The translations under genes were made by a program, and so were the position numbers. The notes beneath the pieces were generated by a model that saw nothing but the letters and a program-made list of their open reading frames with translations, was not told the origin of the DNA and did not search any database. A stretch of DNA of 63,017 nucleotides, the filler included, from Platydemus manokwari (lineage: Eukaryota): assembly GCA_037951405.1 (NCBI GenBank). It is 5 parts of 5 records of this genome, joined end to end, with 100 filler letters (N's around TTAATTAATTAA, not from the genome) between each part and the next. Parts side by side here need not be neighbours in the genome. Positions count along the whole stretch, not along the records: positions 1 to 23,189 come from JBBMOY011122551.1; 4 more parts are not named here. One strand, written 5' to 3'. Shown in pieces: positions 76 to 23,189 of the stretch (position 1 is the stretch's first letter; each line of letters begins with the position of its first letter).

Positions 76-1081
76 CAGAGAATTAAAAAAGAATTAAGAA
101 AGAATGTATATAGAATATCAACCTTTACTCCTGAATCGGGAAACTCGTTGGAATATTAGTATTCTGTTTGAAAATCTTTCCTTCTAATTTAGCTTGCCCT
201 TCACCATAACCAATGTACTTATTTCATGCAGAAAATCCTTCTTGACAATGAATTCTGAAAGTCCCATTGATATAGTCAAATATTAATTTAATTAGCTTAT
301 CATACGGCCTTTGTTGATTATAACCAGGCAAATCCTATTTCCCGCTCAAATTGTTTACACCGGGCTCCTCAGAACGATAGTAAAAACCGGTTTAAAAAAG
401 CAAGATGGATAACAAACCATCACTTACATCGAGCCGAGTGTGTGACTGTATGTAGTGGTGGGAAAAATTAAAATCAGTCTAGAGAGATTCGAAAACCATC
501 ATCATTTCACAGAAATATAGAAATATCGATGTGTTATATATTATGGAAATATTGTTTTGTTGTGATATATTTATTTTTTCATATTATATTACTATAATCA
601 CTTATCTCTCTTTACAATCACAGTAAACCCAGGCGCAATTTTCTGGTAAATAAATTTTGTCATGGTGCTTTGTGGCCCTTTGGTATTGTGATTCGACTCT
701 AGCAGTTCTGTAGTTTTTGTCGCTCACTATCAGTTTTGATGCGTTTTGTGATATTGTATTTACATATATTTTGTTTGTGAAACTCATCTCACTCATATTT
801 TCATCATCAAACAGTCTCTTGGGAAAGAATGGACATGAAATTATTTTTTTTGTATTTTTTTGTAATTCGTTTTAATAAATTTGTTTTTTTATTTTAATTT
901 TTAGATTATACCAAATTCTAATTACTTTACACCAAATCCCACGAGACCGTTTATTCACCCGTATTATAGATAAACGAATTTCTAGTGAATTTACTAATCA
1001 TCATTGCGGTTGCCCGATTCTGTATTACCTTTTTCTTTTACCATGTTTTCGTCAGATGACACAATGATTTGTTGTTATTAG

Positions 1082-1225
1082 GGCCGGAAGATTGCAACCT
1101 CTTCATTTATCACCTACCTCCGGAGTTTGGAGACCACGATCTGCTGCAGATGTTCAGTCCCTTTGGAACCATCACTAGCGCAAAAGTATATGTAGATAGA
1201 GCTACTAACCAAAGTAAATGTTTCG
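1082..1225 (+). CDS. CELF: Internal exon of a CELF/Bruno-like RNA-binding protein (N-terminal part of RRM3)
   Basis: Translates [48 protein letters not shown](G), the CELF RRM3 signature. AG acceptor at 1080-1081 and GTGAG donor at 1226, both phase 1. Other exons were not identified. Confidence 0.9.
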
Positions 1226-1340
1226 GTGAGATTTATGTTTTCATATTATTTTTGCTCGTATATGATATTAACTATATTACTTATCATATTAAACAATTAT
1301 TATAACAATTATTAATACCATTTTTGATATTTTTAATATT

Positions 1341-1519: not shown

Positions 1520-4500
1520 AATATCAGCTGTTTCCATTTTAAAAAATCTATTTATCTTGTGTGATTTTTTCTTCAGAAAAACGTCTTCTCCAACCCAGAA
1601 AATTTTACAACCTCTTTTCTCAGCACTGAATTTCCTTAGGTTTGTGGTTACTGATTTTAGCTGGTTTTCCGTTTCTTTAATGATCTGGTTGTGATGGCTT
1701 GATTCATTTAATCGTAACCCATGCACACTAATTTCAAAACGAGAATGTTGAATTGAATTCTGATATGTTGCATTGACGATGAATTATATCCGCGGTATTA
1801 ATTTATACCAAGCCCGTTTCTCTGATGCCATCGTTGTTACTATCATATCTCGAACCATCCTTATCATCCTTTCAGCTAAGCCATTTGTCTGATGTTGGTA
1901 TAGAGAGATAAATTCTTGCTTGATTCCAAAAAGGTATCGCTAATTCCTTCATTTCCATTCCCTCTAAGACTCTACCCCGATCAGTGAGCATTGATACCTC
2001 TAGATCCAATTATTGATAATGGACTTGGAAAAACTGATTTTGTCTTGTCGAATAAGTGGCACTAAGCTTACTAACTTACTGAATCTTTCTACTATAACCA
2101 ACAGATATTTGGTTTTAATCAAAAGCAATTCCAGAGCACTAAACTCCTCCATGGGAATCGGAATTTCTTTAGCCAGTCCAGTGTGAACCTTCCGTCTAGC
2201 ACAAATATCACAATGCCGTACTTTGTGTTTAATCCTTCCTAACCAATTTCTTATTACCGATACGACAAAACTCCTCATTACAATTCGTTTCTTTCCATTC
2301 TCATTATACACCGCCATATCTTCAAACAACACATATTTCTTTAAAGCGTTAAAATATTTGCTTTTCTTGACAACTAAATTGAGTGCTGTTTCCGTTTTCG
2401 AATGGAACCAACGACAATATCTTCTTCATGAATCTTTCTTAGTTCGTTATTATTTACAATTAAATACTTGACAACATTAATAAGCCGAGTTTTTGGTTGA
2501 CCTTCTTTAGGCCTCTGGTGCTGAGTTAAGCATTGTAAACAAAATGCTTCGTCTATCCTTGAAAGTCCATCTGCATTTCCATGATCTGATCCCTTCCGAT
2601 ATTGAAATTCGAAATTGAATCCAGACAGATGCCATGTTTGAACCATTGAACCATGTTTGATACTGAGGGCTAGAGGGTTTGTTAGTTTTCTTCATGTATC
2701 TCAAGGCTTTGTGATCAGTGTGGGTCACAAATTTCTTATCCAACAGATAATGTTTGAAATGCATAGTAAACTCGTGGATTGCCAAAAGCTCTTTCCTCGT
2801 GACTCAATAACCTTTTTGGTGACTGTAAAGAGTTCTAGAACCCTAGGCTACTACTCTTTCTTTTCCATTGTCATCCAAATAACATAGAACACCTCCAATT
2901 GCTCCGAAACTAGCGTCGATGTCTAAAATCATCTGTTTGTTTGGATCCGGAAAGGCCAACATTAGAGCTGTGCATAATTGTTCCTTAATGTTTCCAAAAC
3001 TTTCCTCACAGTCTGTATTTCACTTCAATTTCTGATCACTTCCAGTCATCATCGCATATAATAGAGTCGTAATTAATGCGTAGTCCTTGATAAATCTTAT
3101 GCAGTAATTGTATAATCCTAGGAACGACCTCAACTGAGTGATGCAACCAGGTTTTATTGCTTCCTTAATCTTCTTTACTTTGTCGTCATTACTTTCTATA
3201 CCTTTTGCACTGACCGTATGATCCAGGAAATTTAACTTTCTAGTGCCAAAAGTACATTTCTCGGGATTGATTTTCAAACCTGATGATTTAATTAACCTGA
3301 ATACCTTGTACAGTTCCTCATTTTGTTCTTTTACTGTTCTTCCATACACTAAAATATCGTCCAGATAAACCAGAACGGCCTTGTAAATCAAGTCCTTGAA
3401 TATAGTATTCATTAGACTCTGAAACGTTGCTGTCACGGTAAATAATCCAAAAGGTAGTCTGTTAAAACAGAACTGCCATTTCCAGTGCTGAACGCCGTTT
3501 TCATTTTAGAATCTTCCTCAAGTTCCACCTGATAATATACTTGGCCTAAATCTATCGTGGAGAAAACTGTCGTTCCATACACTTTTGGATATTAGGTCCC
3601 GGAAAAGAAAACTTCTCAGTCTGTTCGTTTAATTTTTCGTTAATCTTTCTTAGGAACCATGACCAAAGGAGAGTTCCAAGGTCTCTTGCAAGGTGTTATG
3701 ACATTACTTTCCAGAAAATTTTCTATCAATTTTTGAATTTTGGTTTCTAAATTTATTGGCTACCTTCTGGGGTTTTAAGCAATAGGTCTCTTTTGTACGG
3801 ATCTCGTGCTTCATCAAATCTGTTAGTCCCAAATCAAACCGAAACCATAAAAATCGAGCCATTTTCTTTTATACACCTATTCAATGAAATATCGTTCTTA
3901 TCAGCAATACTCTTCAGTGCCATTTCGATTCTGTCTTGGTCACTGTATTTCTTTCCCACATCCTTGGCATCAATTGATTTTATCCCTGCAAGGAATATTC
4001 CACAAGTCTTCATCATATCAACTCCTCCGATAAATCCTGGTGATATTTCTTTTACTACAATGATCTCCTTTACTAGAATTTTGTTGTTCCAAACTATTGG
4101 GATCCTTATTTTCCCTAAACACGATTTGTGTGTATTGGAGAATACACCAGCCAATCGAACATCAGAACTTTTAATCTGAGGCGCTCCAATACGCTTCCAA
4201 TTGCTCTCGTTCATTACTGTTATTGATGCACCAGAATCCAATAACATTTCAATACGTGTACTTTGCACTCAATTTTACTCCACTGTCTACTATCTGCTTT
4301 CTAATACATCTGTGAATGCTTCCTCTTCCTCTTGCCGTTTTCCTTTTTACTCCTATTCTATCTCTAGCTGATATATCTTCTATTGACTCAACCCCACTGA
4401 CGAGATAGGCACAGGAGGTTGATCCCAGTGTTTTTGTCTTCCAAGGAGAGTGAACTTACATAATCACTTGCTTCACTTTAAGTTTGAATAACGGTTTCCT

Positions 4501-5400
4501 CTTCTTCATCATGGATGCACAGTATTCTCCTCGGACTATTGTAAATAGGCTTCTGGGTAAATAACATTCTCGGAACGAATGTCCTTCTTTACCGCATATC
4601 AAACATTTATTCCGCAGTGGATATTCAAACTTGTTTGTCTATGATTGTTTGGAGATTCAGTGCCATTAACTGATGCTCGGTGATATTCTTTTACACCAAA
4701 ATCTCTTTCCTGCACAATTGGACTTGGCTTTTTGAATGACGTCTCCGTCTGAAAGATCTTTCTTGGTTCACTTTGAAATACCGACTGAGCATATGTCTTC
4801 TTGATGGTGTTTATGGGCTTCGTAGGAGTTAACTTCTCAAAATTGACAACCAGCTCTCTTCTTCTATTGTCGGACATCGCAGGGTCGAGAGTAAATGACT
4901 CTTTCAATTTCTTACTATATAGACCTTGCAGAATAAATAGTCTTGAAATTTCTTCAAGAGTGATTTTCTTGTCAAACATTTCCGAAACTAGCTATTTTAC
5001 TCAAAGTTCATAACTACGATATTTTTCATCTGGTCTTTGTTGAATTGCTGCCAAATCCTAAACCTTGTCATAAACTGTTTTGGCATGTGAAAATGTTTCT
5101 AAAAACCATTTCTCAATTTCTTCATTTGAAACAGCCTCTTTGAAACTGCTGAATTCTTGCCACAGTTGTTTGGCGTCATCTCTCAAAAGCAGTTCCATTT
5201 GATTAAAGGTCACTAAGTCTTTGGTTGTTTGGAACCATTTCTCAGCGTATTGGATTGATAAATCAAAAGATGATGGTTTCAGAATTAATAGTTCCTGCGT
5301 TGTTTGTGGCAGATTCGCAAAAATTTTCTGCCTCTCTTCTCGTTTAGCTCTAGTCAGATAAAAGCCAGTAAAATGATAACTCGTTTGCATCAATATTTTA
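1520..5400 (-). mobile_element. Degenerate Ty3/Gypsy LTR retrotransposon internal region (gag-PR-RT-RNaseH-IN), copy 1
   Basis: Minus-strand ORF fragments: gag (5058-5393, 4599-4979), protease LLDSGAS (3834-4268), RT YLDDILV (3020-3436), RNase H TDHKAL and HGNADGLSR (about 2500-2990), and integrase zinc finger CDIC plus core YLLVIVERFSK (about 1700-2330). The order PR-RT-RH-IN is Gypsy-type. Many frameshifts and stops. LTR boundaries not resolved; about 5400-6200 may be leader or LTR. Confidence 0.93.
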
Positions 5401-7642
5401 TTCTAATTCAAAATTGCACCGTTTGTTTTTTTTTAAATATTTAAACAAATCTCATTTTTTATCTAACTCGTACCGTAAAAGGTGAATGCGACTTAGTACC
5501 GTTACTTGTTTTCATTTGGACTTTTCAGATATCCTTCAAGTGGTTATCTGCTTAAGCAGCGGACCACACAATTTGATAATTTTATGTTCTATTTTTGAAT
5601 GTTTAAACCTTTATGTCTAAATGAATTTTATTACCTATTATCGAGTTTTGATTAATGATGGCATATGAAGGCATTTAAACCTCGTTATTTTAAGTTTGCT
5701 TTAACCAGAACTAACGTCCCGTTACATCAATCTTTTCAAACTACACAGTTATCTTTACATAATTTCAATTTAACCGGTACTTTCGACCTTATACAAATCG
5801 TCATAGTCCTCTAAGACCAGTGATAGGTCATACGAATTATCCCACCATAAAGTCTAAGTCCAACAACGAATTGATTAAAAAAATTATTAATGAGGACTAA
5901 GTCCTGTGACTTCTGGTAATTTACCTCATAATCTCCTTCTACCTATATAACAATACCCAGTAACTACTATTCTTTATTAACGCAACTACACTAGATGTAC
6001 TAAACAATGCAATACACCGATTTACTATCTTACAATCTCACCAGTTCCACGAGAAATAGTTTAAGAAATAACTTATCATTTTACCATGTATACTACATCT
6101 GGTTGCAATGACGAATCTCTTGATTTGTCCACACTGGAAAATAAAACATGTTCGTTCCGAAACTGGTATTTAATAATTAATTTTCATCCTCATTTTCTTT
6201 TTCGTTTTCGTTTTTTAAATTAGTTCTTTATGTTTATTTGTTTACTTATTTGGAATCTTTTATTGGTCAATCGATTAACATGCATCTGTATTAGGTATTC
6301 AGTGATCAATTTCTGGTTCAAAGTACTTTGTTCGTTATTCAGCTCATTAATCATTCACTGTTATGAATTTTTAATTTTAATCCTGACTGATACTGTTTAA
6401 TTTTCAATGTTTTATTTATTATTAATCTATCAATTTTGAGATTAATGTCGAATATTTTGTAAAATTATATCGCTATCAATGAACATAATACCTTTTAATG
6501 ATATCGTGGTGCTTTACCTTTATTTTATTAATTAAAAAACGATCAATTGGACACAATCAAGTCTGATATATTTTTTTCAAACTACAAATGCCGAAATTCA
6601 AACCGCTTCTAAGTGACAAATATTAACTACAATTAATCTTCGAATTTCAACACAAATACAGTTGCTACTGACATGTACTCAAGAGATATTCAGATATACA
6701 AAGGACGGATATTACCGAAATGAGCTAATGTTATTTATTTATAAATGGCTGGATGTTGGTCTACTTGTTTTAGTGATTTATTCAAAAAAATGTTATTAAT
6801 TTTTATATTATGATTTAAGTAAATTATTAATGATTTTGTTTTAGAATTTTTCTAAAATGTTTGTTTACAATTTTTTAATTATTTTAATAACATTTAGTAT
6901 AGTTTACAAACTGAAAAAATTATTGCTATTACAATAAAGTTTCGTCTCCAAGATTTTAGAGAATTGGCTTAAAGTTATGAAAAAAATTAATTAATCCAAG
7001 CTTAATTTATGAAATCATGATTTGATGGGAATCACTACTTTACTAATTTAGACTTATATTTTATTTTATTCTTAACTTGATTCTTCTAATCATCTCTTTC
7101 ATCAGATATTTCAACACTTTCTTCTTCCATTCGTTGTAATTATCTGTTTAAATATTTTAATTTATTTCACTCATAAGTTTTTCACTTCTGTTCCAGTAGT
7201 GATAAATACATAATGAATCAGATATCTTTGTTTTAAACGATAAAAACTTGTTACCCATTAGAAATTGCTCGAAATTTTTCGAAGATAGTCCTCGCAACTC
7301 GAGATATTAAGCTTAACTGCTGAAAAACCTATTATTAGGCATCTCGAGTGTATTGTGTAATAATAACAAAAACAAGTTAAGTTACCAAATAAATATCGAT
7401 TAAACTCCCCATACTTGTTCATTAAATCACACCAAAATTCGAATACAACTTTGATTTATAACGGTTTCTTACAATAAGCAGTCCACAAGAAATGTATTTA
7501 CCATAAGAACTCAACTTTTTATTATCATAATTAAATAATAAATTAAAATAAACATCGAATATCTCCACTTTATTGAATTTTACGATAATTACACATTTTT
7601 TACAGTTAACTTCGAATCAAAAGCATGATATTTCAAAATATT

Positions 7643-10600
7643 TTATCTCATAAACTGTAAAACTAATTCAACATTAGTCGTGTGAGGAAATGGATCTAAT
7701 GGGATAGCTTTCAACAATTTGAACGGCTCATCGATGGCAGGAGATTCTTTTATCTTGCAAATTTCATGTAAATTCGAAATCGAGTAATTGCTTATGTCCC
7801 GTGAGATATGGATAATTGTTTTTAAAGCCTGACATTTGCGGAGTTCCGAAAACAGGTTGGTTCCTAAAACGTTCAATTAAGAGTCTATGCTGTACATAAA
7901 TAATGCTGTTGGAAAACAACTGTATTTCAAATTTATATTTCAATTTTCCTCAATTAATTCTGTTCGAAAAGAGATCGTCAAAATGTATTTCAGTCACATA
8001 TATATATATATATATCAGTTGAGAAAGTTTAAACCATATATCGCTTTATTAGTATCATATAGATTTATTAAAATATTTTTGTAATTGTTGAGTTTTAGGA
8101 TATTGATTATGTACTAAAAAACATTAAAAAAACTGATAGTCCTCAGTTAAACCTTCTTAAATAAAAGACCGCAAAAATGCTTCTTATCTAGTTCAGATGG
8201 AAAGACTAAAAGTTATAAACTTGATTTGATATTTTCACAAACAATAATATTCCGCGTTTCGACAGAAGATAATTTTAAAAAGTGGAAATGTTGTATCTTA
8301 ATTCTCCGAAGATATTTAATTGAAAATCAAATGCATTTTTTAATAAAAATAAATTAAATTTATGCTAAAAATAAAGAGGCAAGATTGATATAAAAATAAA
8401 GATTTTCAAAGGATGTAAATGCGTACTGGTGGAACTTCATTATCAAATTACCAACCAAAGAACGATTTTGAGAATGGATTTTGTCACCATTAAGAGTGTA
8501 TTTATATAAATCATAAATTGTATTAATATATAATTTATATGACATTGAAAATAAAGAAATGCAATGCAAATGGCTACAATATGTTTCTAATCATCAATGA
8601 TTTTAATTTAATTTTTTATTAAAAAAAATTACAGAAATTCTTTGTCTTTTCTCCTTATAATATAGTCCATATCCCCGTCGTGTAAATATTGCTATTCAAA
8701 TTCAAACTTTTATGAAATTAAAAATTATTTCTCTTATTCTTCATCCCAGAGTGCTTCTAAATAAATGTGTCTCAGGCCTAAAGACTAAACAAAAATCACG
8801 TGTTCAAAATATGCAGTTGATATTGATGATGAAACAGATTCGACCTCAATATTGTCGACAAATTCAAAGACCATAGTCAGCTTTCCGTGATTTTTGATCA
8901 AAGCAAATCGAAAATCATTTCAAATCACCAAATCGAACCAAAAAATCATAAAGAGAAACAAATAAATGAAAAATAATTATTAGAATAAATTATATTTACA
9001 TTATATTATAATAGCTATCGACAATTTCTGCATAGTTAGGCTTTAAAACATCGGAGCTAACGGATTAGTGAATAGCATCAATGAAATCATAAATTTCAAA
9101 GGTGAAGAACGAAACATTATTTTACAGAATGATTGATAGACAAATCCTCATTTTACAAACCTTGTAATTAGCTTTCTAATTGATACTCAAAATACATTAA
9201 ACGAAATGAGAATTTAATCTTGTAACAAAGTGAAATATCTTTCGTAAACCGTGGTATTATGAAGGATAAATTTTTATCTGAGATCATTTATCATCATCCC
9301 ATTACTTTGGATCGATTCTGGTTTTTTTATTAGATGCCACACACAGGAGTAAAATGAGAAAAAAGCATCATCACATGAATAATTTATGAGATTCTTAACG
9401 TTTTAAATTCAAACCACCATGTAGAAATCAAACTCAAACTAACAAAGTGTAGGAAACTAAACATTGAGAAAACATGAAATGGGAAAGATACACACAAAGA
9501 ACAGTACTGGATTATTCCAATTTAATTCCAAAAAACGTTAATCTCAAGAAAATGTAAAACAAAGAAAGGTGATAAACCCAATGAACATAAAATTACCAGA
9601 TAATAAGGAAATGAAATTTCTTATTATTTTATACTTATATTAAAAAATGGAAATACATAAACGAAATCACACACTTACTTAAACCAAAACTATTAGGATT
9701 AACAACAACAATTATATTTTCATATAATCGAGCTGCTTCAGAGTTGATAAAATTTGGGATAAATTCTTCCACATCTTGACAAATATATTCCGTATTGGGG
9801 ATTTCTGTACAGGTTATTAGTAAAGTAACCATTTGGACAAACCTTACGATTTAACAATGAGTTTTGTTCAGCACTGTGACTGTTGGATGATAAAATATCA
9901 ACTCCAATGACCTTACTTACGATATCCGATAATAAAATCCCAATAGCCCCTACTTATCTTTAATAGACTTATTATAATATTTAAAACACTACCATTTCCA
10001 CAACAAAGATCAATAATCAAACTATTTTTCAATGAAAATTTAGACGATTCTTTAACTATTCTCCTCGTTGTCTGATATAAGGCCTCGGCTACTTCGACAT
10101 TTGTCTGTTGTTTTTTATAATTTTTAAATATATTTCAAGAAATATCAATATAAACAATATTAATGCACTGAATTTTATTGATTTATTTCAATGATCTAGA
10201 TATTAACAATTGAAAAAATATTTAAATAAAAATTTAAATTTAACCAATAGAATATGGATATTAAAAATAGAAAATAAAAATCGTGATAGTCAATCAATTT
10301 TTATAACCAGTAAAAAAATTTAATAAAAAAAAACTCCTGTCTTTGACCAACTAATTAACATAGGCAAGTTATGAATATGGGTGCATTATTATGGGTGAAA
10401 AGACATCAAGAGACTACCCCCTACCAACACAATTCTCATTTGTGAATATTTGAAACTTTAATTGAATTATTTTGATATCTGTTTGGATTTATTGATGATA
10501 TCTTTGAAAATTATTTACTCTTATCAAAACTAGTAAAGTGAGAATGGAGCAACTATCAATTAATTTGAACCATTCGATTCCATTCAGCAACAGATACATT

Positions 10601-13600
10601 CATTAGCGAAAATCAAATTAACAAATTATAAAATCTTTTCCCGACAGGAATTGATTACAAGTTGAATAAGAAAATGAATTTTTTGAATTGTTTGAATTTT
10701 TTGGAATTTAATCCGTCAGTAGTTATTTATATTGCAAATTTTATCGGTATCAATCTCCATTGATACTACTGGATTTACTGTGCGTTGTCGTTAAATAAAT
10801 ATATAAACGCTGAGGAGATGACATTTAAATGGACTTTTGCTAATACAAGCTTTAGGATTCAACGCGAAAGACTGATGTCAAAATTTATGTGGAATGCAAA
10901 TCATAATTTTAAAAAGGTGTTTCATTCATTTTTCTTCATCCAATGAAATGAAATATATTTTAAATATTATTGAATTAAACTTCATTAATAAAAATGATCC
11001 CTAATAATTAATAAAATACGTCCCTCTAGTGCAAAGGTGGCCAACTTTTGTGTACGTAAGATCGACATTTCATTTGAATAACATATCACGCAATAGACTA
11101 AAATTGGCTTCAAGATCGAACAGTCGATCGCGATCGACCGCTTGGCCACCCCTGCTCTGGTCCATAGTAAGAATATAATTATGTTGTAAGCCCACGATTA
11201 GTATACATAAATCATTACATCATTATGTTTAAGGGAATCAAACAGATCTTTATGTACTGTTACATGAAATTATTTTTAAGCTTTATTGATTTTCCTCAAT
11301 TTCTCGCCTGTTCATAAAAAAATATTTCCCATCTTAATAATTATTAAGAATAAATTATTAGAAAATTATCTCATTATCTAATCATATAAAATTAATAATT
11401 GTGTGACGTAATCAATAAAAATAAATGAATTATCATTGTTTTCATAAAATTTCCGATATTAATTAAAAAATTTCTGAATTTTTTAGCCTTAGCAGCGATA
11501 TACTGGTGACATAAAAAAATGATATCACGCCTAATCATCAGTAAATCAATGAGGAGATGCATTATCTTGGTATAAACATACATAATACCCTGATCATATC
11601 TTTTGTTGTTATTATTTAAGTCGGCAGTGACACAACAAATCCCACTTATTTGCTTATTCGGACTAAAGAGCTCAGGTAAGAGGATAAAATAGGCCCAGGA
11701 ACTCAGGGCTCACAAAGGTTACAAATTTTAAACCAAAAATTTTAGCTGAATTATTAATCATATAACAAGCATAAATTACTGGAAATTTAGACTTGGGACC
11801 AATATGGAATGTTTTCCCGCATAAAGTTTCAGTGATATATTGATCACCCCATAAAAGTTGAGTGGGCAGTTTTTTCCCATCTTCTGACACGACTGAACGA
11901 CTAAGATATTTATGCTCAAATTTCGTTATATATTTTCATTTTTACTTCAACTGAAAATATAAAGATCGAATATCGACATGTTCATTCTTCAACATGGGAA
12001 TGAATTTGTCCACTAAATCATTTTTAATGTCTGATATTCCATCCTAATCAAGAACTAAACAAATCTATTACATTCAATCTCGCTATCATACTGGTGATAA
12101 TTGAGATCCGTCGAATCCTATATGAATCATTGATTCATCTTTTCTATTCGATCTCACTTGAATATTTTCCCAGTATCTCGGAAATTTTCTCTTCGTTAGA
12201 AGATCTTTGGAATGTTTTCGGATATATTGTTCAAATAACTATATACAATATAATAAAAATGAAAAACAATAACCAGATTTAGATGTATATATTAAGTTCT
12301 CTTTTAACCAGCATTATAAATCACTTATTTCGATAATAAGACTTAGAACGAGTCGGGGCTGGTAAAAATAACATAAATAACAGATAGTTATTAAATCACA
12401 TTTAAAACCAATTTAGGAATGCTTAATGTGAGTATTTTTAGATGGATTAAAAATTTAAAGATTTAATTCAGATTTGATATACAATAATACCGGCTTCCAT
12501 GACGACCACGCAACTGGGTACGATTTCGAGAAGATCAATGGCTGAAAATTAAAGAGAAGAAGAAAGATATTGATAATATATGAGAAGATATAATGAAGAT
12601 TTAAAGAAGATATAAGACGATGTAGAGAAGATATAAAGATAGAAGAATTAGAGAAATTATGTAGATAATATGTAGAGTGGAGTCAATTAAGAATACAAAG
12701 AAAATCAAAGATTTCAAAGAAAGGGAGATGTGAGACTTTATAAATGAATAAAATTTTTAAAGATTTAATTCGGGTTTTATATAAAATTATATTAATTTGA
12801 TTATATAATTGTATTTAAATATATAATTTGGTGTCGTGATTTTTCAGTTTGTTTTCAATGTGTGCTTTATAAAATAGTAGCGGCTTACACTTAATATTAT
12901 TTATTTTATATTAAATATATGTTTGGCGGATATTTAAAGTCAGTCTTGGAAAAAGTGAGATTAAAACCTTTTGTCACTGCTTTGCTAGAGTACAGGGTAA
13001 GTTTGACTGTTAAAATGAAATATCGATATCTGGCACAGGAATTTTTAAAAATTACATTAAAAATTATATCTGCATAACTAAGAACTCAGTTTATATAAAT
13101 ATAATGATGTACTTTGATGATCAATATATTGTTTTTCTTATGAAGCTGTGGAAACATTTCTGGATCAATAATTGCCTTTTTATCTGAAATGTTTTATTAA
13201 AAAGAAAATATTGATCAAAATACATATAAATAATCGAATAATACAACCATGTTTCATAGAAAATGTGTGACCAACTATAAGATTTCCTTCGGGATCCAAT
13301 CCTACTGAAGCACTTATTTTGTTTCGATAACCATCAATAATTGGAGACTGGAATATTTTCAATAATTTCTCATTGTATTTGATATGATTATAAAATGTTT
13401 ATATAAAGCTATTTGATACACAGCCAGTAATTTCTTTTTTTAATAAGACTTAGCAAATGCCACTTAGCAATATTTATATTTATTATTGATAATTTCAATA
13501 AACATCATATAAAGCAGAGGTGGCCAACTTTTGTGTACGTAAGATCGACTTTTCATTTGAATAACATCTCACGCGATCGACTAAAATTGGCTTCAAGATC

Positions 13601-14850
13601 GCCCAGTCGATCGCTATCGACCGGTTGGCCACCCCTGATATAAAGCATCCAAATGTGCTATTTGATAATTTGCATCCAAAAATCGTTCTTTAAACATTAA
13701 ATAAAAAACCAGCATGGCATAGTTTGGGAGTGAATTTTAAACATAATCAAGATAAAATGCTTGTCACACATTTCGATGTTTTACTAAATCAGATATGATT
13801 TATTTCTTTACACTACCAGATCCCTGATAAAGCACCCGAAAATGGATAAAATTAAAAATTACATTTTCATTATTCTCTTTATTCAGTGGATTGTCAAAAT
13901 TTTGATAATTAATGCCAACATTAAAAAATCATCAATAAAGATCTTCATTAACAAATTCGATAAGAAACAATGGACACAAAAAATAATATCTTTCATGTTT
14001 AAAAGTCACATTTCAATTAAAATGACAAAGCTTTGTAATTTGATTCGTGGAGGACATGATGATTTGGAGCTAAGGCATTGAATAATGTGAACGCTGAGTA
14101 AATGGTGTGCTCGAGATTCTATTTGGTACTGGTGAGAAGGGATTACAAAAATGAAAACGTTCAATTGGCGAACTATTATGACACTTATATGATTAATAAT
14201 TTTTCAATATTCATTAAAATTGCATTAAAATTGGTACATAAAATTTTCTTTTTTCTTTTCTTATTTTCATTATTTTTTAACAATAGTTTGAAAGTAAATC
14301 AAAAACTTAAACCAACAAAAAAACTAATAAAATATCTGATGACGTAATTATAAAATTCAATATTATTCGAAATATTATTTTAATTATCTTAATCATAAAA
14401 AATTTAGAAGTACATACTTAACCAAAAAATTATTTCTCTATTTTTGTCACCAATAATAATACACAACTAAAATAATTTTTAAAAAGTTAAAATTATCAAA
14501 GTAATCTGACAATTAATCACTACAATGAAACATAAATAATATAACCCCTTGTATGGATTCGACTGGACAGAGAACTCTTTTTTTCGATCCTTGAGTTTCA
14601 TACATTTCAACTGACAAAGAATTAGACTTTCTAAGTACTGAACCAAGATTCTTTAAAACATTTAATACACGAATCTCTTTCATCTAGAATAAAAGGTATC
14701 GAACAATTTTTCTAATTTATCCACAATACTTTCAATTGAGCATCGTAAGGTATATTAATTAAAGGAGAAAATTTTTTCCAAGCACTGCTGAAAATAGTTA
14801 TCTTATTAAATTATTTAAAAACAAAACCTCTTAACAGTAATTTGGTTCAT
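7643..14850 (-). CDS. TRMT2A: TRMT2A/B-family (TrmA/RlmD-like) tRNA m5U54 methyltransferase homolog with divergent catalytic residues; 12 exons, 438 aa model
   Basis: Exons 14850-14828, 14787-14730, 14683-14546, 13347-13248, 13183-13113, 12238-12092, 12043-11946, 11900-11780, 10104-9993, 9949-9848, 9804-9679, 7863-7643. All introns are GT-AG with consistent phases; total 1317 nt with no internal stop. Motifs SPLINIPYDAQL, CPVESIQGSPIIDGYRNK, WENIQVRS, LIIDLCCGNGAIG and PFKLLKAIPLDPFPHTTNVELVLQFMR match the TRMT2 family. The start exon is less certain, and A versus B orthology is not determined. Confidence 0.85.
11032..11154 (+). mobile_element. 123-bp hAT (Buster/Charlie-like) MITE, copy 1, in a TRMT2-like intron
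   Basis: TIRs CAAAGGTGGCCAA...TTGGCCACCCCTG. Degraded 8-bp TSD: CTCTAGTG (11024-11031) and CTCTGGTC (11155-11162). Near-identical to 13515-13637. Confidence 0.85.
12426..12795 (+). repeat. Dispersed purine-rich repeat bounded by about 60-bp direct repeats, copy 1
   Basis: ATGTGAG...AAAGATTTAATTC occurs at about 12426 and 12728. The interior matches the reverse complement of about 61530-61960. Confidence 0.7.
13515..13637 (+). mobile_element. 123-bp hAT (Buster/Charlie-like) MITE, copy 2, in a TRMT2-like intron
   Basis: TIRs CAGAGGTGGCCAAC...GTTGGCCACCCCTG with a perfect 8-bp TSD ATATAAAG at 13507-13514 and 13638-13645. Confidence 0.92.
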
Positions 14851-17800
14851 GAATAAATAATCTAAATTAATTTGAATTATTATTTAAACAAGCATCGTAT
14901 TAAAGATTTTGGACAAAAATAATCTAATTACACATACTAGCGTGTGACTATCTTCTAATGAAAATCTATACTTAATATTTTTACAGAACGAAGTATACTT
15001 AAATTGGTCTGAGTGAATGTGTAAGCTTTAAGTAAATACGTACACTTGAAATAGAAAAAATCGATTTTAAAACAGATATTGTTGGAATTCGCTCTCAAGA
15101 GAATTTTAAATTGATTCCCTAATTGTTTGAATACTTTTCATTATCGTAACAATAATAATAATCAAGACCGTTTTAGTCAAAATTATTTTTAAGTCAGACA
15201 ATTTCTTAAATTGATATTAAAAGTGTGTGCATTTTATATCTAAAAACAAAATTCCCGTATCAGTCTTAATTACTGGTGTAAAATATTTTAAAATTAATTT
15301 GATCTTGCTTTTTAAATAAACCAGATAATTAATTCATTAGATTTTCGTAAACGCCCTGCTTGAAAATGTTTCGAGTGTCAGAAAATTTTTGCTGATTACA
15401 AACGTGGTGAGACGTAAAGATGGATAATCCTAGATTAGATGCCCAAAACATTGCATAAAAAATAAATTTGATTTGATTAAAGGATTCTCCATAAATAATA
15501 ATTATTTAATTTTTCGTAAAGAATATGGAAACAATTCTTTGAAACTGGTGTGGCATGTACATTGTTGAATTAAAAGGTTAGTAGTAAAATGATTCAATTA
15601 ATATAATTCCTAATTGATTGTAAGTCAATTTCTTCTTTAATTGACAAATCTGAATCAACAGAGTTTTAACGATAAATATTTTGAAGATAATTACGACAAT
15701 AAAGTTGGTACAGCAAGTGTGTCTGATATTAAATGTACACTAAAATCAATTAATATGAATTCTATTATTCAGTGTGAGTATAGTGATAATGATACTGCTG
15801 ATATTAATAAAATTTATATAGGAAAACGAAAAAACAACAAATTTTATCAAAACACGCAACGCTCTACTCAAGTAGATTTCTGCAAGCTATCCATACGAGG
15901 GATATCGGAAAACCAAATTGAGGTAACTTTTATGTTTGGTATACTTGCTGTAGAGCGCAACAAATACTACTAAGATCCTATCCTGACTCTAAAAAAATAG
16001 TGGTTGGGAGCTAGCAAATCACCCAAAAAAAAACACAATCAAAGGTTCAACCCTTAAACTCAAGTTATTATTAATGTTAGGATCCGAATCCATTCCGTAA
16101 TGAGTCACAAGAGCATATTACGCACACAAACATAATCATATATTTAAAATTCAAAAAATAAATCAAATTCTATAAATAGAATTTATTAATTCCAAAAATA
16201 GATTAGAAAATAAAAATAGGATTTTAAAATTTCAGAAATAGAAAAATCGTGATTGGCCACAGTTATAACGAAAATTAGTATAAAAGTAGCCGGAGAAACA
16301 GAACAAATCACCAAAAAGTTAACTAACAGTTACATATTAAAGCAATTATCTAACAGGAAACTCCGATAAACGAGAAAAGTTAATTAGCGACTAGACAAGC
16401 ACAGGAATCTCCGTACAAACCAAACGATTTAAGCAGCGAGGTACAAAGTGACTTATTGATTGATTTTCATACCGTGTCGATAGATTCAGTATTAACTAAT
16501 ACCTCTTAGTCTTCCTCCCATCTTTTTAATAGTTTTTATTTCATTGTACGGTTCACCCGTATCGTGAATCTTGCCCTCTGGTTAAGCGAGCCACGCTTCG
16601 CCAGTTCTTAGTTTACACAATCTTAATAATTCAATTTTTATTTAATTTATAGGTTGTATTGATTCATAATTATATTTTAGTATCACTGCGTTATTGTTAT
16701 TTATTGTCCTATTATTATTTATATTTAAATTCATCTACTTCTAACGAACGCAGCCAATCATTTGCAGTCTGGTTGGCACCACAAATGACCACGGTAAAAC
16801 AACAACAAACACATAAAAAACCCAATAATACATTTAGAAAACCAATACTAATAACGGATCCAGTCCCTTCAAAAATTTGATCTATCGGTCGAGAAGCTAC
16901 TTCTGGTCTTTACTACGTACAAGCGTGCGCATTAATCAGTTACGGACCCACTACACTAACTTCCTTTCTGATTTTCAGATATTCGGGAGCAACATTTTCT
17001 AACATCCCGCAGTTATAGTCTATAAGTAATCGAGTATTAGGGAAACAATTTTCTCGAATATTTCAATCTAAATAAAATAATAAATCAAAATCAATAAACC
17101 TGATTTCCGTTCGAAATATTTCCCTTTGTAATTCCACTATCAGCAATCAATATTTCTGGTAAAATAATCTTCTCAAATTTCTTTTGTTCTTTCCAGTCGC
17201 TACTATTGTGACAATCAAAATTAATTGCCTTATTTATACAGAATTTTGCTGTCCACAAAATTCTCTTCCTATTTGACATGCACTGCCGACTACTATTTTC
17301 GATCAATAACTTCCTACTCTAGGAAGTTATTTCTATTTACATTTTTTTAATTGTTATAAACAATAATTTCTAATAATTATTTTGTATTATTTTTTTATTT
17401 ATTATTTTCACATAATATTTATTTTTACCAATAATAATTTTATTTAAGCATAATTATCCTATTTTCCTTTCTTTTTTAAGATATAACAATTTATTTTTAG
17501 TATTCATCATTTTAACACTAATATTAGTCTTTAAATTTATTATTTTAAATATCTTTATCATTTATTGATTATTGGACTCTTTCAGTTAATAAATATTAAT
17601 TAAATTAATTATCGATAAAATAAATTTTAACGATAGTGTTATAAGTTATAATACAAAAATTTATTCACTCTCGAAATCTCCTTCGTCAGTAGCAAGTATC
17701 TCTAGTCTTTTCTAGTAACCTTCACGTCTTAAGATTTTTAATTGATGAATTTTATGAAATTTTCTGACTTTGTATACTATTTTTTACTGGTTCTCATGAC

Positions 17801-18441
17801 TTCCATGTCTTCTGATGGAAACTTGTTTGGTGATTAGTTAATAATAAATCAACGATTTTTCAATAGATAATTTACTATGTTACTAGATGAGCTACCGTGA
17901 GTTAGAGATTGATTATTCCAACAATATCTGAAATTTCACAGATTTATAGGTTGCGTATAGATGAACTATATAAATATTAATAATAACAACAATAATACAA
18001 TAATGAAATACTTTATTATAATAATAATTATCAAATGTGTTATGCAGTAAAGTTAAAAGGAAGAAGCTGTTGTGCCCTGAAAATTTATAAACAACCCACT
18101 GCGATATAGAAACTAAAGAAATATGATTTTAGAGCTCACAAATTCAGTTACGACTTTGTGAGGTTTAGTATTCACTGACAACAAATCTCCTTTCGAAGAA
18201 TGATATCAGGTGAATAGGATAATAATTTGAATTTACCATTTTAATTGAAAGTTGGGAAATAATGATCGTTGAATATCTGAGAGTAGCCGATTATCACGAA
18301 TAGCGTTTTCTCAAATTTTCTTAGTGAGCTTCCTCGTTTTGTGGCGAAAATACTGAATTTTATTTCAGTATTTATAGTGTTTTTGAATGTGGGCGCATGA
18401 ATAAGTTTTTTTATTTGTTGATTTCCTTAGTAATATCCACC

Positions 18442-18506
18442 GGTGTCATGGCAATTTGCATTTAAATTTGAATTTCTATGACTATATTTCTGATTGCCAT
18501 GGCAAC
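18442..18506. promoter_or_regulatory. Two RFX X-box-like motifs and an overlapping octamer motif
   Basis: ATTGCCATGGCAAC (18493-18506) is a 13/14 match to GTTGCCATGGCAAC. Also GGTGTCATGGCAAT (18442-18455) and ATTTGCAT (18454-18461). May be repeat-derived. Confidence 0.35.
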
Positions 18507-20308
18507 GTGAATTAATAAACATTTTGTCAAAAAAATTATGGTTATTACTAATGTAATTGAGTCCACACGACTACATTCTAACGAATGTGGGTTTATTTGC
18601 TTATATTTTCTGTTATATTTTTATGTAATATTTTATATTATATGTATTGTTATTGTGTAATATTTTGCGTTATGAGGCTTGCAGCCTGCGTGGGTATTAT
18701 CCTGACACTTCATTTATTTTAAATTTTTATTTATTCTATAATAATTTTCTCATTTTTCAATTTTTGTGTCCAGATACTATTGTTATTTATTAATAAATTA
18801 TTTTACAATTTTTATGTTTCGTTTCTATCTGCATTCGCTCTTTAAATTTGATAAAATTTTATTTTTCTAACATCACTCATTACTATTTTATCAGTATTAT
18901 TCTATTATTATACAATTTTTTATAATGGTTTGTTTTACCTTTTCGATATTATAATCTCATTTTATTATTATCATTATTATCATTATTATTATTGTTATTA
19001 TTATTTCTTTATAATTGATCTCATTTATCTTAAATATTATTTATTTTTTCAATTTACATATTATCTATCTTTTTTTCTGACTAATTTTAAAATTTATTTT
19101 ATTGTATTTTTATTATTATTTATTAATTATTTATAATGAAAATTATTTTTATTATATTCACATTAATTTTAATATTATTTATAATTTTAAATTATTTTTG
19201 AAATATATATATATATTTTTTATATATTTTAGGTTCTGATAATATGGACGTGATAGCAGATAAAATAAATCAATAAATCACTTTATATAAATAATCATTC
19301 AGAAGGATTTGAAACACTATTACGAAAATAATATCAATGTTAACAACTCATTTCGTCAAAATCAATATCACGTATGCAGTAAATAGTGTTGGATCATCAA
19401 AGAAAATAAAGATCACAAGTCAGGATCATCACGGTAAATATTGTCTCGAAAGACTTCATCAATCTGCTGGTTCCTAATTGTGCTTAATGATATTAATGAT
19501 ATCAGGACCGAATATACTTTATTCGTATGAAGTACAGCTAATATGCGTTCATGTTTTTATGTTGCAAATACAACTTCTTACATATTTTAATGGTTTTTTC
19601 TTTAGTATCTATCTGATTATTCCGTAAACTTATTGCTACACTACTGTGTAACTAAGCAATAAGGTTTTACTAGAGATCTCAGCACTATGTATAACCTGTC
19701 TTTGACAACATACTATCAAATGCCATTTTCAAAATTGTTACATGATTAAGAGAATGACATCTGATAAAGGATAAATATAATTTAAATAATAATTAGGTAA
19801 ATTTTTTCAAGGTTTATACCTTAATTAATAAAATAACACTTTACGTAATTGATGGATCAGTAGAAACAGAAAGTAAATTCACATAAATAATAAGTTATAG
19901 ATTAGAAAAAGATAATTGAAGTTACAGCTGAAAAATGATCAGAATAATATTTTAACAAATTAAACAAAATATGATTTAATTACTCTTAAAGAATTTTATG
20001 TGTAACATTCAAGTTTAAGTTATGATATCTGTTAATTTAGATCGTTTTAAACTAATATTCTTACCAGTATGTAATGTTCAGATTTTTTCTAAAATATAGG
20101 GAATGTTCAAATATACTTAAATCTAATATTAAAAAAATAATTTATCATTTTTCCGTTTATTTTTAAACTCAATTCAACAAATTTAATTTAGTAAAAGCCT
20201 TTAATTCAATTTATTATTGATTACATTATTAATTAAAATCAAGAGCAATTGTTTAAATGACTTATAAATAAATAAGTTTCCATAAATTACAAAGAAAAAT
20301 TTTAAAAG

Positions 20309-23189
20309 ATGTCTGATTCTAGCTCTCTCGAAACAGAGACTATTGAAAAGATATATCAAAAGAAATCACAATTAGAACATATCTTACTTAGACCAGATTC
20401 CTATGTTGGTTCGATTAAAAATGAAGAAAAGACAATGTGGGTTTACGATCAGATAAAAGGTGCAATGATTGAGAAAAAATTTGCTTATAACCCTGCACTG
20501 TACAAAATATTTGACGAAATTTTAGTTAATGCTTCCGATAACAAAATTAGGGATCCAAAAATGTCTGCTATTCGAATTGATATTAATAGGTATTGTAAAT
20601 ATTACAGAATTACGTAATTACTTTTTATTAAGCAATGAAAATCTAATAAGAATTTGGAACAATGGTAAAGGTATTCCTGTAGTTATGCATAAAGATTTGA
20701 ATGTGTACGTTCCGACAATGATATTTGGTCAATTGTTAACCTCAACTAATTTTAATGATGATAAAAAACAAGTTACAGGAGGTAGAAATGGATACGGAGC
20801 TAAGCTGTGCAATATTTTCAGCACAAAGTTTGTGTTGGAAACATCTTCGCAAGAATATGGGAAAAGTTTTAAACAAGTTCGAATTTATTATGACATTAAT
20901 TCAAATACATTCCACTTCTGTTATAGACTTGGTCAGAAAATATGAGTTCAAGTACTGATCCAGTAATTGAAAAAAGTACGAAAGAAGATTTTACTTGTGT
21001 AACATTTTATCCAGATTTAAAGAGATTTGGAATGAGCCGTCTAGACGAAAATATTATTGCATTATTCAGTCGTCGAGCATTTGATATAGCTGCATGTACA
21101 AATGGTATCACTGTTCATCTTAATGGTCAACAAATTCCTGTTAGAACTTTCAAGGATTATGTCGAATTATATACCAAACGTTCGGGGAACAATGATGAAG
21201 AGTTGAAAGTAATATATGAAAAATATGGAGACCGTTGGGAAGTTGCGATGACAACTAGTGTCAATGATAGTTTCACACAAGTCAGTTTTGTAAATAGTAT
21301 AGCAACAACGAAAGGTGGAACGCACGTTAATTATTTGACTGACCAAGCTGTTTCGAAATTATTGGAAATTGCCAAGAAAAAAATCAAAAGTGAAAAGAAA
21401 GAAGTCAAATTAAAACCCAATCAAGTTAAAATGAATATGTGGATATTTGTAAGATGCTTGATAGAAAATCCCAGTTTTGATTCACAAACCAAAGAAAACA
21501 TGACATTGAATGTCAAAGATTTTGGATCAACATGTGTGTTGTCGGATAAATTCATCACTCAGGTAATTATTATTTTTTACCTAATGACAACGTCGATTTT
21601 TAAAATGGAATATATTATTAATGTTATTAGCATACTATAAGCCTTAGAATTATTCATGAATTAAGGTTGTTTGATTAAACTTTATCAATCTGTAAGATTC
21701 GTTAATAAAATTCGAAAAATAATTGTGTAATATTAATAAGACTTGAATATTCTATAATTATTTTTATTTAAACATTTTAAATCAAGTGCTTTCTTATTTT
21801 TTGATAAGTTAAACTAAAGATTTGTTAAAACTCGTTTGGTTCTTTATATGATTATGTTGCTTCGTTGGGTTCAAGTTTTGCTTCTAATCAGCACCAAGTA
21901 GTAGGATTTAAATAAATTGGTCTCCAATTGAAATCTCTTAACTAGATAAGAAGATTAATTAAAAACAATCTTTATGAAGAACCAATTTAATTGAACTTGT
22001 TCCAAATATACTTTGCCATACGAAACATGGTGGATAATTTCTCGAGTAATTTAATATCACCCATTACATAAATTTTTGAAATCAGTCAACGTTATATCTG
22101 TATTTTATAATCAACATTTCCAATCAAAATTGTTCAAATTTTTTAATAAAATTATTTGATGATTAAATTTTAACATTGTATTAAAAATTATTTTACAAAA
22201 TTAGTCTTTATTAAGATTAATTTAGGAAATCAGCCATCAATTGGAATCAGTTCTTAATAAATCTTGATTTAAGCAGAAATACTAATTCAAAGAAAATAAA
22301 ATTAGTCTTTTCCTTAATATTTTAAATTAATATTATGAACAAGATCTTTAAGTTTTATCATAATTTTAACGATAATTACAAATCATAATCATTCCTTAAC
22401 TCTGTAAATCAATTTTTTTTAATTCAATAAAATGTAAAGATTTTAATGTAATGTTTCAGGCTCTAAAGTTATGATTCGTTTTTATTTTTATTTAAATATA
22501 TTAATTATATTGATATTAATTACACAATTATTGATTAAATATATTTGTCATAGCTGGGTAAATGTGGTATAATTGAAAAAGTTACTCTCTGGGCAAACTT
22601 TCAAGATCAAGCATTATTAAATAAGAAATGTAGCAAGACAAAACAAGCGCGCTTAAAAGATATACCCAAATTAGATGATGCTAATTTTGCTGGAACAAAA
22701 AGTTCCATTCAATGTAAATTATTCTTAACCGAAGGAGACTCAGCCAAAACGTTGGCTGTTTCAGGGATGAGTGTCATTGGTCGAGATCACCATGGAGCAT
22801 TTCCTTTAAAGGGTAAATTGCTCAATGCTCGTGATGCCAGTTCAAAGCAATTAAGTGAGAATGCCGAAATATCAAATTTAATAAAAATTTTGGGATTACA
22901 ATATCAACAGAAATACGAGCTTCCAGAATCTTTGAAAACTTTGCGATATGGCAATTTAGTATTAATGGCGGATCAAGATCAAGATGGCTCGCATATTAAA
23001 GGATTAGTTATAAATTTCATCCATTCTAAATGGCCCAATTTGTTAAAACATGGATTCATTGAACAGTTTATAACACCGATTGTGAAAGTTTTCAAAGATA
23101 AAAATGAACTTGCCTTCTACAGTATTCCAGAATTTCTTGAATGGGAGAAGAATACACCGAATTCTAACAAATGGACTAAAAAGTACTAC
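20309..23189 (+). CDS. TOP2: DNA topoisomerase II (ATPase and TOPRIM domains), 3'-truncated by a contig join
   Basis: Exons 20309-20589, 20633-20876, 20927-21562 and 22554 to beyond 23189. Motifs YQKKSQLEHILLRPDSYVGS, FDEILVNASDN, GGRNGYGAKLCNIFS, FDSQTKE, LTEGDSAK, PLKGK, MADQDQDGSHIKGL. Confidence 0.97.

Follow-up and report, generated by a model that had tools for sequence, protein, structure and literature searches.

The gene described here lies on the minus strand at positions 14850-7643 of a 63,017-nucleotide (nt) stretch of DNA from Platydemus manokwari (assembly GCA_037951405.1), which is joined from parts of five records and is called the window in the following; the gene is in the first part (positions 1 to 23,189, from JBBMOY011122551.1), which is called the piece. 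The reading that we regard as probable is that an intact gene descended from TRMT2, unable to make 5-methyluridine (m5U) by the mechanism of its family, has been retained under purifying selection. The modification m5U54 is near-universal, yet deletion of its writers gives little phenotype. Point mutants of TrmA and Trm2, and the bovine TRMT2B with its missing catalytic Cys, have served as arguments for a second role of these proteins, that of a tRNA chaperone independent of catalysis. A homologue with a dismantled active site, in which the parts that bind RNA and S-adenosylmethionine (SAM) are under selection, would be an independent natural test of this idea and a way into the question of what these proteins do apart from catalysis.

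Active-site residues

In the family mechanism, the uridine is flipped out and attacked at C6 by a Cys thiol; C5 then takes the methyl group of SAM, and a Glu removes the C5 proton (PMC7237155, PMC7641329). The protein encoded in the window was compared, at the key columns, with an alignment of 145 full-length relatives. It turned out that three residues present in all relatives (145 of 145) are replaced: the Cys of motif VI (TrmA C324) by R387, the Gln of F-F-Q-x-N (TrmA Q190) by P252 and the first Phe of the same motif by K250. Besides, the Arg of motif IV (143 of 145) is S362 and the Tyr of motif VI, Y-[IV]-S-C (137 of 145), is H384. Other residues are kept, such as D284, G288 and G290 of motif I (each 145 of 145), the motif II acid as D307 (Glu in 130 relatives, Asp in 15), E336 of motif III, and F-P-H-T..E of motif VIII with E431 (TrmA E358, the general base; Glu in 144 of 145). 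Motif IV, N-P-N-S-F-G, keeps its Asn, Pro and Gly and departs from [DN]-P-x-R-x-G at the Arg. Altogether, the window protein retains 56 of the 83 positions that are at least 90% conserved.

Among TrmA mutants, C324A is inactive and still binds tRNA at about 0.03 uM with SAM, the rate of Q190A is only 4-fold lower, and G220D in motif I abolishes SAM binding (PMC7641329). Since the Gln mutant is merely slowed, the Cys is the decisive loss. C5 is activated through the covalent adduct of the Cys at C6, and C324A is inactive; from this we infer that the window protein is a pseudo-methyltransferase, unable to form m5U by the family mechanism. Another Cys as a stand-in nucleophile was considered and rejected. 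The model has seven cysteines, whose positions are also Cys in canonical enzymes or are not Cys in the nearest orthologue. An earlier note on this DNA had pointed to those of LRKC and HEIC as possible nucleophiles; both occur in canonical active enzymes too, beside the catalytic Cys, so they are not new and are not candidates.

The same note had read the family motifs as KFPTN, NPNSFG and HISR, next to an intact motif I and a retained final Glu. These readings and the positions given with them were recovered. Its view of NPNSFG as a change from DPPRxG holds for the lost Arg and not for the leading Asn, which is the usual TRMT2B state (118 of 145 relatives).

Orthologue, clade and selection

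The closest relative is P0001 from another organism, a protein of 238 amino acids (aa) on the 1067-nt contig L003, with 52% identity over 318 codons (57% across residues 123-211, exons 5-7). P0001 reads V-F-P-I-N, K-L-N-K-L-G and C-I-S-N, so the same four residues (Cys, Gln, Phe and Arg) are absent, and the stretches V-F-P, K-L-N-K-L-G and C-I-S-N are uninterrupted in the contig. The two proteins have the derived states S246G, Q252P, G333Q and F397L in common, while the other replaced active-site residues differ between them (R/N, S/K and K/V, window versus P0001). This fits an active site that was already disabled in their common ancestor and may have been drifting since.

In the tree, the window model clusters with P0001, P0003 (163 aa, a UniParc entry) and P0005 (122 aa, on genomic contig L005), with 98% support in the Shimodaira-Hasegawa-like approximate likelihood ratio test (SH-aLRT) and a stem of 1.26 changes per column. 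P0003 and P0005, the distant members of the clade, still have N-P-x-R-x-G and Y-[IL]-S-C; as they keep the Cys and the Arg, the loss is younger than the clade. A profile search led by P0001 over lengths of 131-416 aa, a range that leaves out full-length 438-aa proteins, gave no members beyond P0001, P0003 and P0005. In L005 (610-714 and 1330-1686), the equivalents of window exons 11 and 12 form one exon, and the exon 9/10 boundary is conserved.

Comparing the window coding sequence (CDS) with L003, we got a nonsynonymous divergence (dN) of 0.32 and a synonymous divergence (dS) of 1.8 by the Nei-Gojobori method (NG86) to 2.8 by maximum likelihood (ML), which gives a dN/dS of 0.18 (NG86) to 0.12 (ML) with dS saturated. 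Two open frames at 52% identity with saturated dS cannot be neutral relics. The gene, judged by these substitutions, is maintained by purifying selection and is not decaying. The idea of the earlier note, a maintained gene that has lost its nucleophile and other active-site residues, thus agrees with the residue census, with the nearest orthologue, which likewise has no Cys, Gln, Phe or Arg at these places, and with a dN/dS well below 1.

L003 is intronless at six of the window intron sites and has a 41-nt GT..AG intron (L003 276-316) at the site and phase of window intron 7, which is 45 nt long. The contig has the look of a transcript from which one intron was not removed, or else the gene that it comes from has few introns.

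Gene model

The model was rebuilt by script from the minus-strand reading of 7500-15000 and its stop-to-stop frames. As had been claimed before, it is a 12-exon, 438-aa open frame with canonical splice sites: it runs from 14850 to 7643, its CDS has 1317 nt (438 codons and the stop) with zero internal stops, and all 11 introns have GT..AG. The chance of a random 438-codon frame staying open at this base composition is about 1e-15 by arithmetic. We ran the family hidden Markov models (HMMs) against every open frame of the piece, and only the model exons match, once each and colinearly; alternative exons with canonical motifs were therefore rejected. The exons are as follows.

Exon 1, 14828..14850, minus strand: ATG, 7 codons and 2 nt, with an open frame and a GT donor; the least certain exon
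Exon 2, 14730..14787, minus strand: conserved N-terminal motif, with P16, Y22, Q25, L26 and K29 all kept
Exon 3, 14546..14683, minus strand: within the full-length alignments to relatives
Exon 4, 13248..13347, minus strand: S-P-x-x-x-x-Y-R-N-K motif of the central RNA-binding domain (S74, P75, Y80, R81, N82 and K83 kept); family HMM 31 bits
Exon 5, 13113..13183, minus strand: exon 5/6 junction contiguous in orthologue contig L003
Exon 6, 12092..12238, minus strand: family HMM match
Exon 7, 11946..12043, minus strand: L003 has its 41-nt intron at the same exon 7/8 site and phase
Exon 8, 11780..11900, minus strand: ends in K250-F251-P252 in place of the family F-F-Q (motif X)
Exon 9, 9993..10104, minus strand: T253-N254, then SAM motif I (D284, G288; G290 split by intron 9)
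Exon 10, 9848..9949, minus strand: end of motif I and motif II acid D307; family HMM match
Exon 11, 9679..9804, minus strand: motif III E336, and motif IV N359-P-N-S362-F-G at 9700-9683
Exon 12, 7643..7863, minus strand: motif VI H384-I-S-R387 at 7810-7799, motif VIII F-P-H-T-T-N-V-E431, and the stop at 7645-7643; family HMM 67 bits

The introns 1 to 11 are 40, 46, 1198, 64, 874, 48, 45, 1675, 43, 43 and 1815 nt long; the short ones are about 45 nt, and the content of G and C (GC) is 27%. K-F-P and T-N are split at the 11780/10104 junction (codons 11788-11780 and 10104-10099). Motif I reads D-L-C-C-G-N-G-A-I-G, of which D-L-C-C-G-N-G lies at 10011-9948 across intron 9. The codon of R387 is CGG at 7801-7799, and that of Glu431 is at 7669-7667. 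Alignments of the relatives begin at residue 13-15, in exon 2; the 7 residues of exon 1 themselves have no homology support, and the start codon rests on the open frame.

Each of the 11 introns corresponds to an intron in a TRMT2 gene from amphioxus, from one of two sea urchins or from a moth, at the same codon or the one next to it. This validates the exon model, the exon 1/2 junction included, and indicates an old animal gene. For instance, the intron after exon 1 (phase 2) is at most one residue from an intron of amphioxus TRMT2B and sea-urchin TRMT2A, the intron after exon 2 has the same site and phase in amphioxus TRMT2B, and at the exon 5/6 site amphioxus, a sea urchin and a moth all have an intron in their TRMT2 genes. 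As to exon numbers in general, sea urchin and amphioxus TRMT2B genes have 10-12 exons, and the TRMT2B of the fish Hoplias malabaricus (L009 301-1710) is intronless, with one uninterrupted frame of 469 codons.

At the base level, contigs of the only public DNA run that contains the locus equal the window sequence across exons 4-12 with no listed difference, and exon 12 is matched with 0 differences. One contig, which covers 12042-12550, has one differing letter of unlocated position. The run may be the assembly's own data, so that this is a consistency check and not an independent one.

Family membership

On sequence comparison, the gene descends from the TrmA/RlmD/TRMT2 family (Pfam PF05958). 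An exhaustive representative protein search with the last exon gave 40 relatives. In local phmmer, the full spliced model matched full-length relatives with 104-182 bits over residues 13-438, and the best match was P0001 with 260 bits. We also made local profile sets of 116 sequences named TRMT2B or TRMT2B-like (N-P-x-R-x-G) and 23 of A-type (D-P-P), and their HMMs score the model with 279 bits (TRMT2B-type) and 333 bits (TRMT2A-type). Neither single exons searched against Pfam nor the last exon searched against PDB sequences or in a word-index protein search gave a match, the exons being too diverged and not long enough for these comparisons. The model is collinear with E. coli TrmA (16 bits) and RlmD (15 bits) through motifs I, IV, VI and VIII. 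P0001 passes PF05958 with 33.8 bits against a cut-off of 23, and its catalytic domain was predicted with a predicted local distance difference test score (pLDDT) of 89. For this fold, the top Foldseek matches are m5U methyltransferases, that is RlmCD, TrmA, a Pyrococcus rRNA enzyme and RumA.

TRMT2A or TRMT2B

To place the gene between the two animal paralogues, the first residue of motif IV is informative, and it is the only informative one among the diagnostic columns. Among the 145 relatives it is Asn in 118 and Asp in 26, and in the window protein it is N359. The relatives with Asn are the proteins that sources name TRMT2B, while none of the D-P-P-type relatives (0 of 26) has it. Besides, we found no exon resembling an RNA recognition motif (RRM) and no RNP1 motif in 14700-20400 on both strands, about 5.5 kb upstream; an upstream RRM exon is rejected for this range, and one farther out or beyond the piece is possible. 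The earlier note had mentioned that the model appears to have no N-terminal RRM of the TRMT2A kind; this is normal for TRMT2B. About 14 residues precede the conserved domain, an N-terminus too short to call a targeting peptide.

Other evidence is equivocal. A first tree left the placement of the clade as a polytomy, a second quick tree grouped it with TRMT2B, and a tree holding it with TRMT2A-type rows had a log-likelihood higher by 8.8, with a p-value in the approximately unbiased test (p-AU) of 0.67. The HMM scores favour the A profile (333 versus 279), which as the broader profile is expected to score any divergent sequence higher. Intron sites 28/0 and 290/1 are common only to amphioxus TRMT2B, and 253/0 only to a moth TRMT2A-type gene; intron positions as a TRMT2B-specific character were rejected, since 131/0 and 253/0 are also found in the moth TRMT2A-type gene. 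Taken together, the motif IV Asn and the absent RRM point to a putative member of the mitochondrial TRMT2B branch, with trees, HMMs and introns giving no clear answer.

Comparison with known systems

The nearest precedent is TRMT2B itself. Its catalytic Cys is lost in Bovinae (Cys to Tyr) and the protein is apparently inactive in rat, while the rest of bovine and rat TRMT2B is conserved and does not resemble gene decay (Powell & Minczuk 2020, PMC7237155). In cattle, tRNA chaperoning may by now be the sole activity of TRMT2B, which agrees with their mitochondrial tRNAs having no m5U54 (PMC7237155). The window protein is like these in that the catalytic Cys is replaced, the remainder is conserved and there is no RRM. 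A TRMT2B that has lost the Cys and is still conserved is thus already known, and the window gene is of the same kind, in an unrelated invertebrate lineage, rather than a new principle. The differences are in depth and age. Bovinae have a single Cys to Tyr change in recent mammalian lineages together with a measured absence of m5U54, whereas the window gene has four active-site residues gone, a state common to two organisms at saturated synonymous distance. Compared with the bovine and rat cases, the erosion (Cys, Gln, Phe and Arg) is much deeper and its history is longer.

Active TRMT2B of human and mouse makes m5U54 in mitochondrial tRNA and m5U429 in 12S rRNA. The window protein is 25-32% identical to canonical TRMT2A/B, and it is like TRMT2B in length class, in having no RRM, in the N-P that opens motif IV, in motif I and in F-P-H-T..E of motif VIII, and the gene has many intron positions in common with invertebrate TRMT2B genes; unlike the active enzymes, it has lost Cys, Gln, Phe and Arg. 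With TRMT2A and yeast Trm2, which make cytosolic tRNA m5U54, it has homologous central and catalytic domains and some introns in common (253/0, moth TRMT2A-type), but motif IV opens with Asn rather than Asp and there is no RRM exon in the 5.5 kb upstream. With the bacterial enzymes E. coli TrmA (PDB 3BT7) and RlmD/RumA (2BH2), it has the collinear motifs in common, and the orthologue the predicted catalytic fold; identity is only 17-19%, and those enzymes are active. A laboratory counterpart is TrmA C324A, which has no activity but binds tRNA and helps it to fold.

Proposed function

With the nucleophile gone and the SAM motifs and the signature of the RNA-binding domain intact, the protein most likely would still bind RNA, and probably SAM, and it may be a chaperone that helps tRNA or rRNA to fold or assemble. 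We propose this because TrmA C324A retains such activity, and because cattle and rat TRMT2B, which likewise have no Cys, have been suggested to do the same. TrmA aids tRNA folding independently of catalysis (PMC7641329), and a catalysis-independent role was reported for Trm2 (as cited in PMC7237155). It is possible, though in our view less likely than not, that this invertebrate lineage has for very long retained a TRMT2-type protein only because of a task that needs no methylation, for example the chaperoning of tRNA or rRNA or a SAM-gated binding of RNA. If true, the gene would be a natural separation-of-function allele. If it were the sole TRMT2-family gene, or if the mitochondrial RNAs had no T-loop substrate, the loss of catalysis could be tied to the loss of the m5U site. 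For annotation, automatic naming would give "tRNA (uracil-5-)-methyltransferase", which is almost certainly wrong.

Alternative explanations

That the odd motifs come from a wrong exon model or an assembly error, with a canonical true transcript, is very improbable. It is true that the F-F-Q site falls exactly on an exon junction and that exon 1 is short and has no homology support, but L003 reads V-F-P-I-N, K-L-N-K-L-G and C-I-S-N unbroken at matching places, no alternative exon in the piece matches the family HMMs, the DNA-run contigs agree in exons 4-12, and the intron positions match those of other animal TRMT2 genes. We also think it quite unlikely that the gene is an incipient pseudogene, which has stayed open by chance or has lost its selective constraint only lately. 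The run search gave no expression data, the clade is on a long branch (1.26 changes per column), and human TRMT2B knock-out cells have no obvious phenotype (PMC7237155), so that the family is dispensable in some settings. However, the genome is AT-rich, so that new stops readily appear, and still neither the 438 codons nor the 22 splice signals are damaged. The orthologue is open on both sides of its retained intron and has derived active-site states in common with the window protein. The erosion is therefore older than the split between the two, for which synonymous divergence is saturated, and despite this dN/dS is 0.12-0.18.

A still-active SAM-dependent enzyme with changed chemistry or target, which transfers methyl to an atom needing no Cys-C6 adduct or takes its nucleophile from elsewhere, is unlikely too, though less easily dismissed. 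In its favour, D284, G288 and G290 of motif I, the motif II acid, E336 of motif III and the motif VIII Glu are all kept, and strong purifying selection is compatible with any function, catalysis included. On the other hand, motif IV, which lines the junction of SAM and target, is eroded here and unrecognisable in the orthologue, the substituted residues differ between the species (R/N, S/K, K/V), which indicates relaxed constraint and not a new conserved site, and there is no new conserved Cys.

Several points weigh against the pseudo-methyltransferase that we favour. One orthologue alone shares the losses, and the selection figure is a single saturated pairwise comparison, made with a contig that retains a 41-nt intron and may be a transcript or genomic. 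The run search for the organism gave one DNA-type run and no RNA run, so that transcription and splicing of the locus are predicted ones. The fold prediction and the Pfam scan cover P0001, not the full-length protein of the window, and in P0001 motif IV is fully degenerate (K-L-N-K-L-G), so that SAM binding itself may be unconstrained. Finally, the chaperone role is proposed by analogy only.

Surroundings in the window

Upstream of the TRMT2-type gene and head to head with it, with about 5.5 kb between, there are several exons of a type II DNA topoisomerase on the plus strand (20309-23189; DNA_gyraseB, Toprim, TOPRIM_C), which continue off the edge of the piece. A 110-codon open frame (15641-15973, plus strand) lies between the two genes and has no Pfam match, and an Rfam scan and a tRNA scan of the piece gave no matches. 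On the other side, an exon-like open frame at 1069-1230 (plus strand) encodes an RRM (Pfam RRM_1, E 1.3e-9), presumably resembling the third RRM of CELF/Bruno-type proteins, and is followed by an assembly gap (a run of N) at 1341-1517. At about 2000-5400 on the minus strand there is a degraded pol of a long terminal repeat (LTR) retrotransposon, where pieces of reverse transcriptase (RVT_1, E 1e-12) and of aspartyl protease are spread over different reading frames; this region lifts GC to 0.36-0.38.

The introns of the TRMT2-type gene also contain repeats. At about 12450-13031 (intron 5) there is a very-high-copy repeat region, where word depth reaches about 11,000 and the DNA-run contigs have numerous joints and loose ends. 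Another repeat is a 124-nt element with palindromic ends, similar to a miniature inverted-repeat transposable element (MITE), whose two copies at 11031-11154 (intron 8) and 13514-13637 (intron 3) are 93% identical. In the DNA run its words occur at a depth of about 43,000, versus about 11 for unique sequence, which indicates thousands of copies in the genome.

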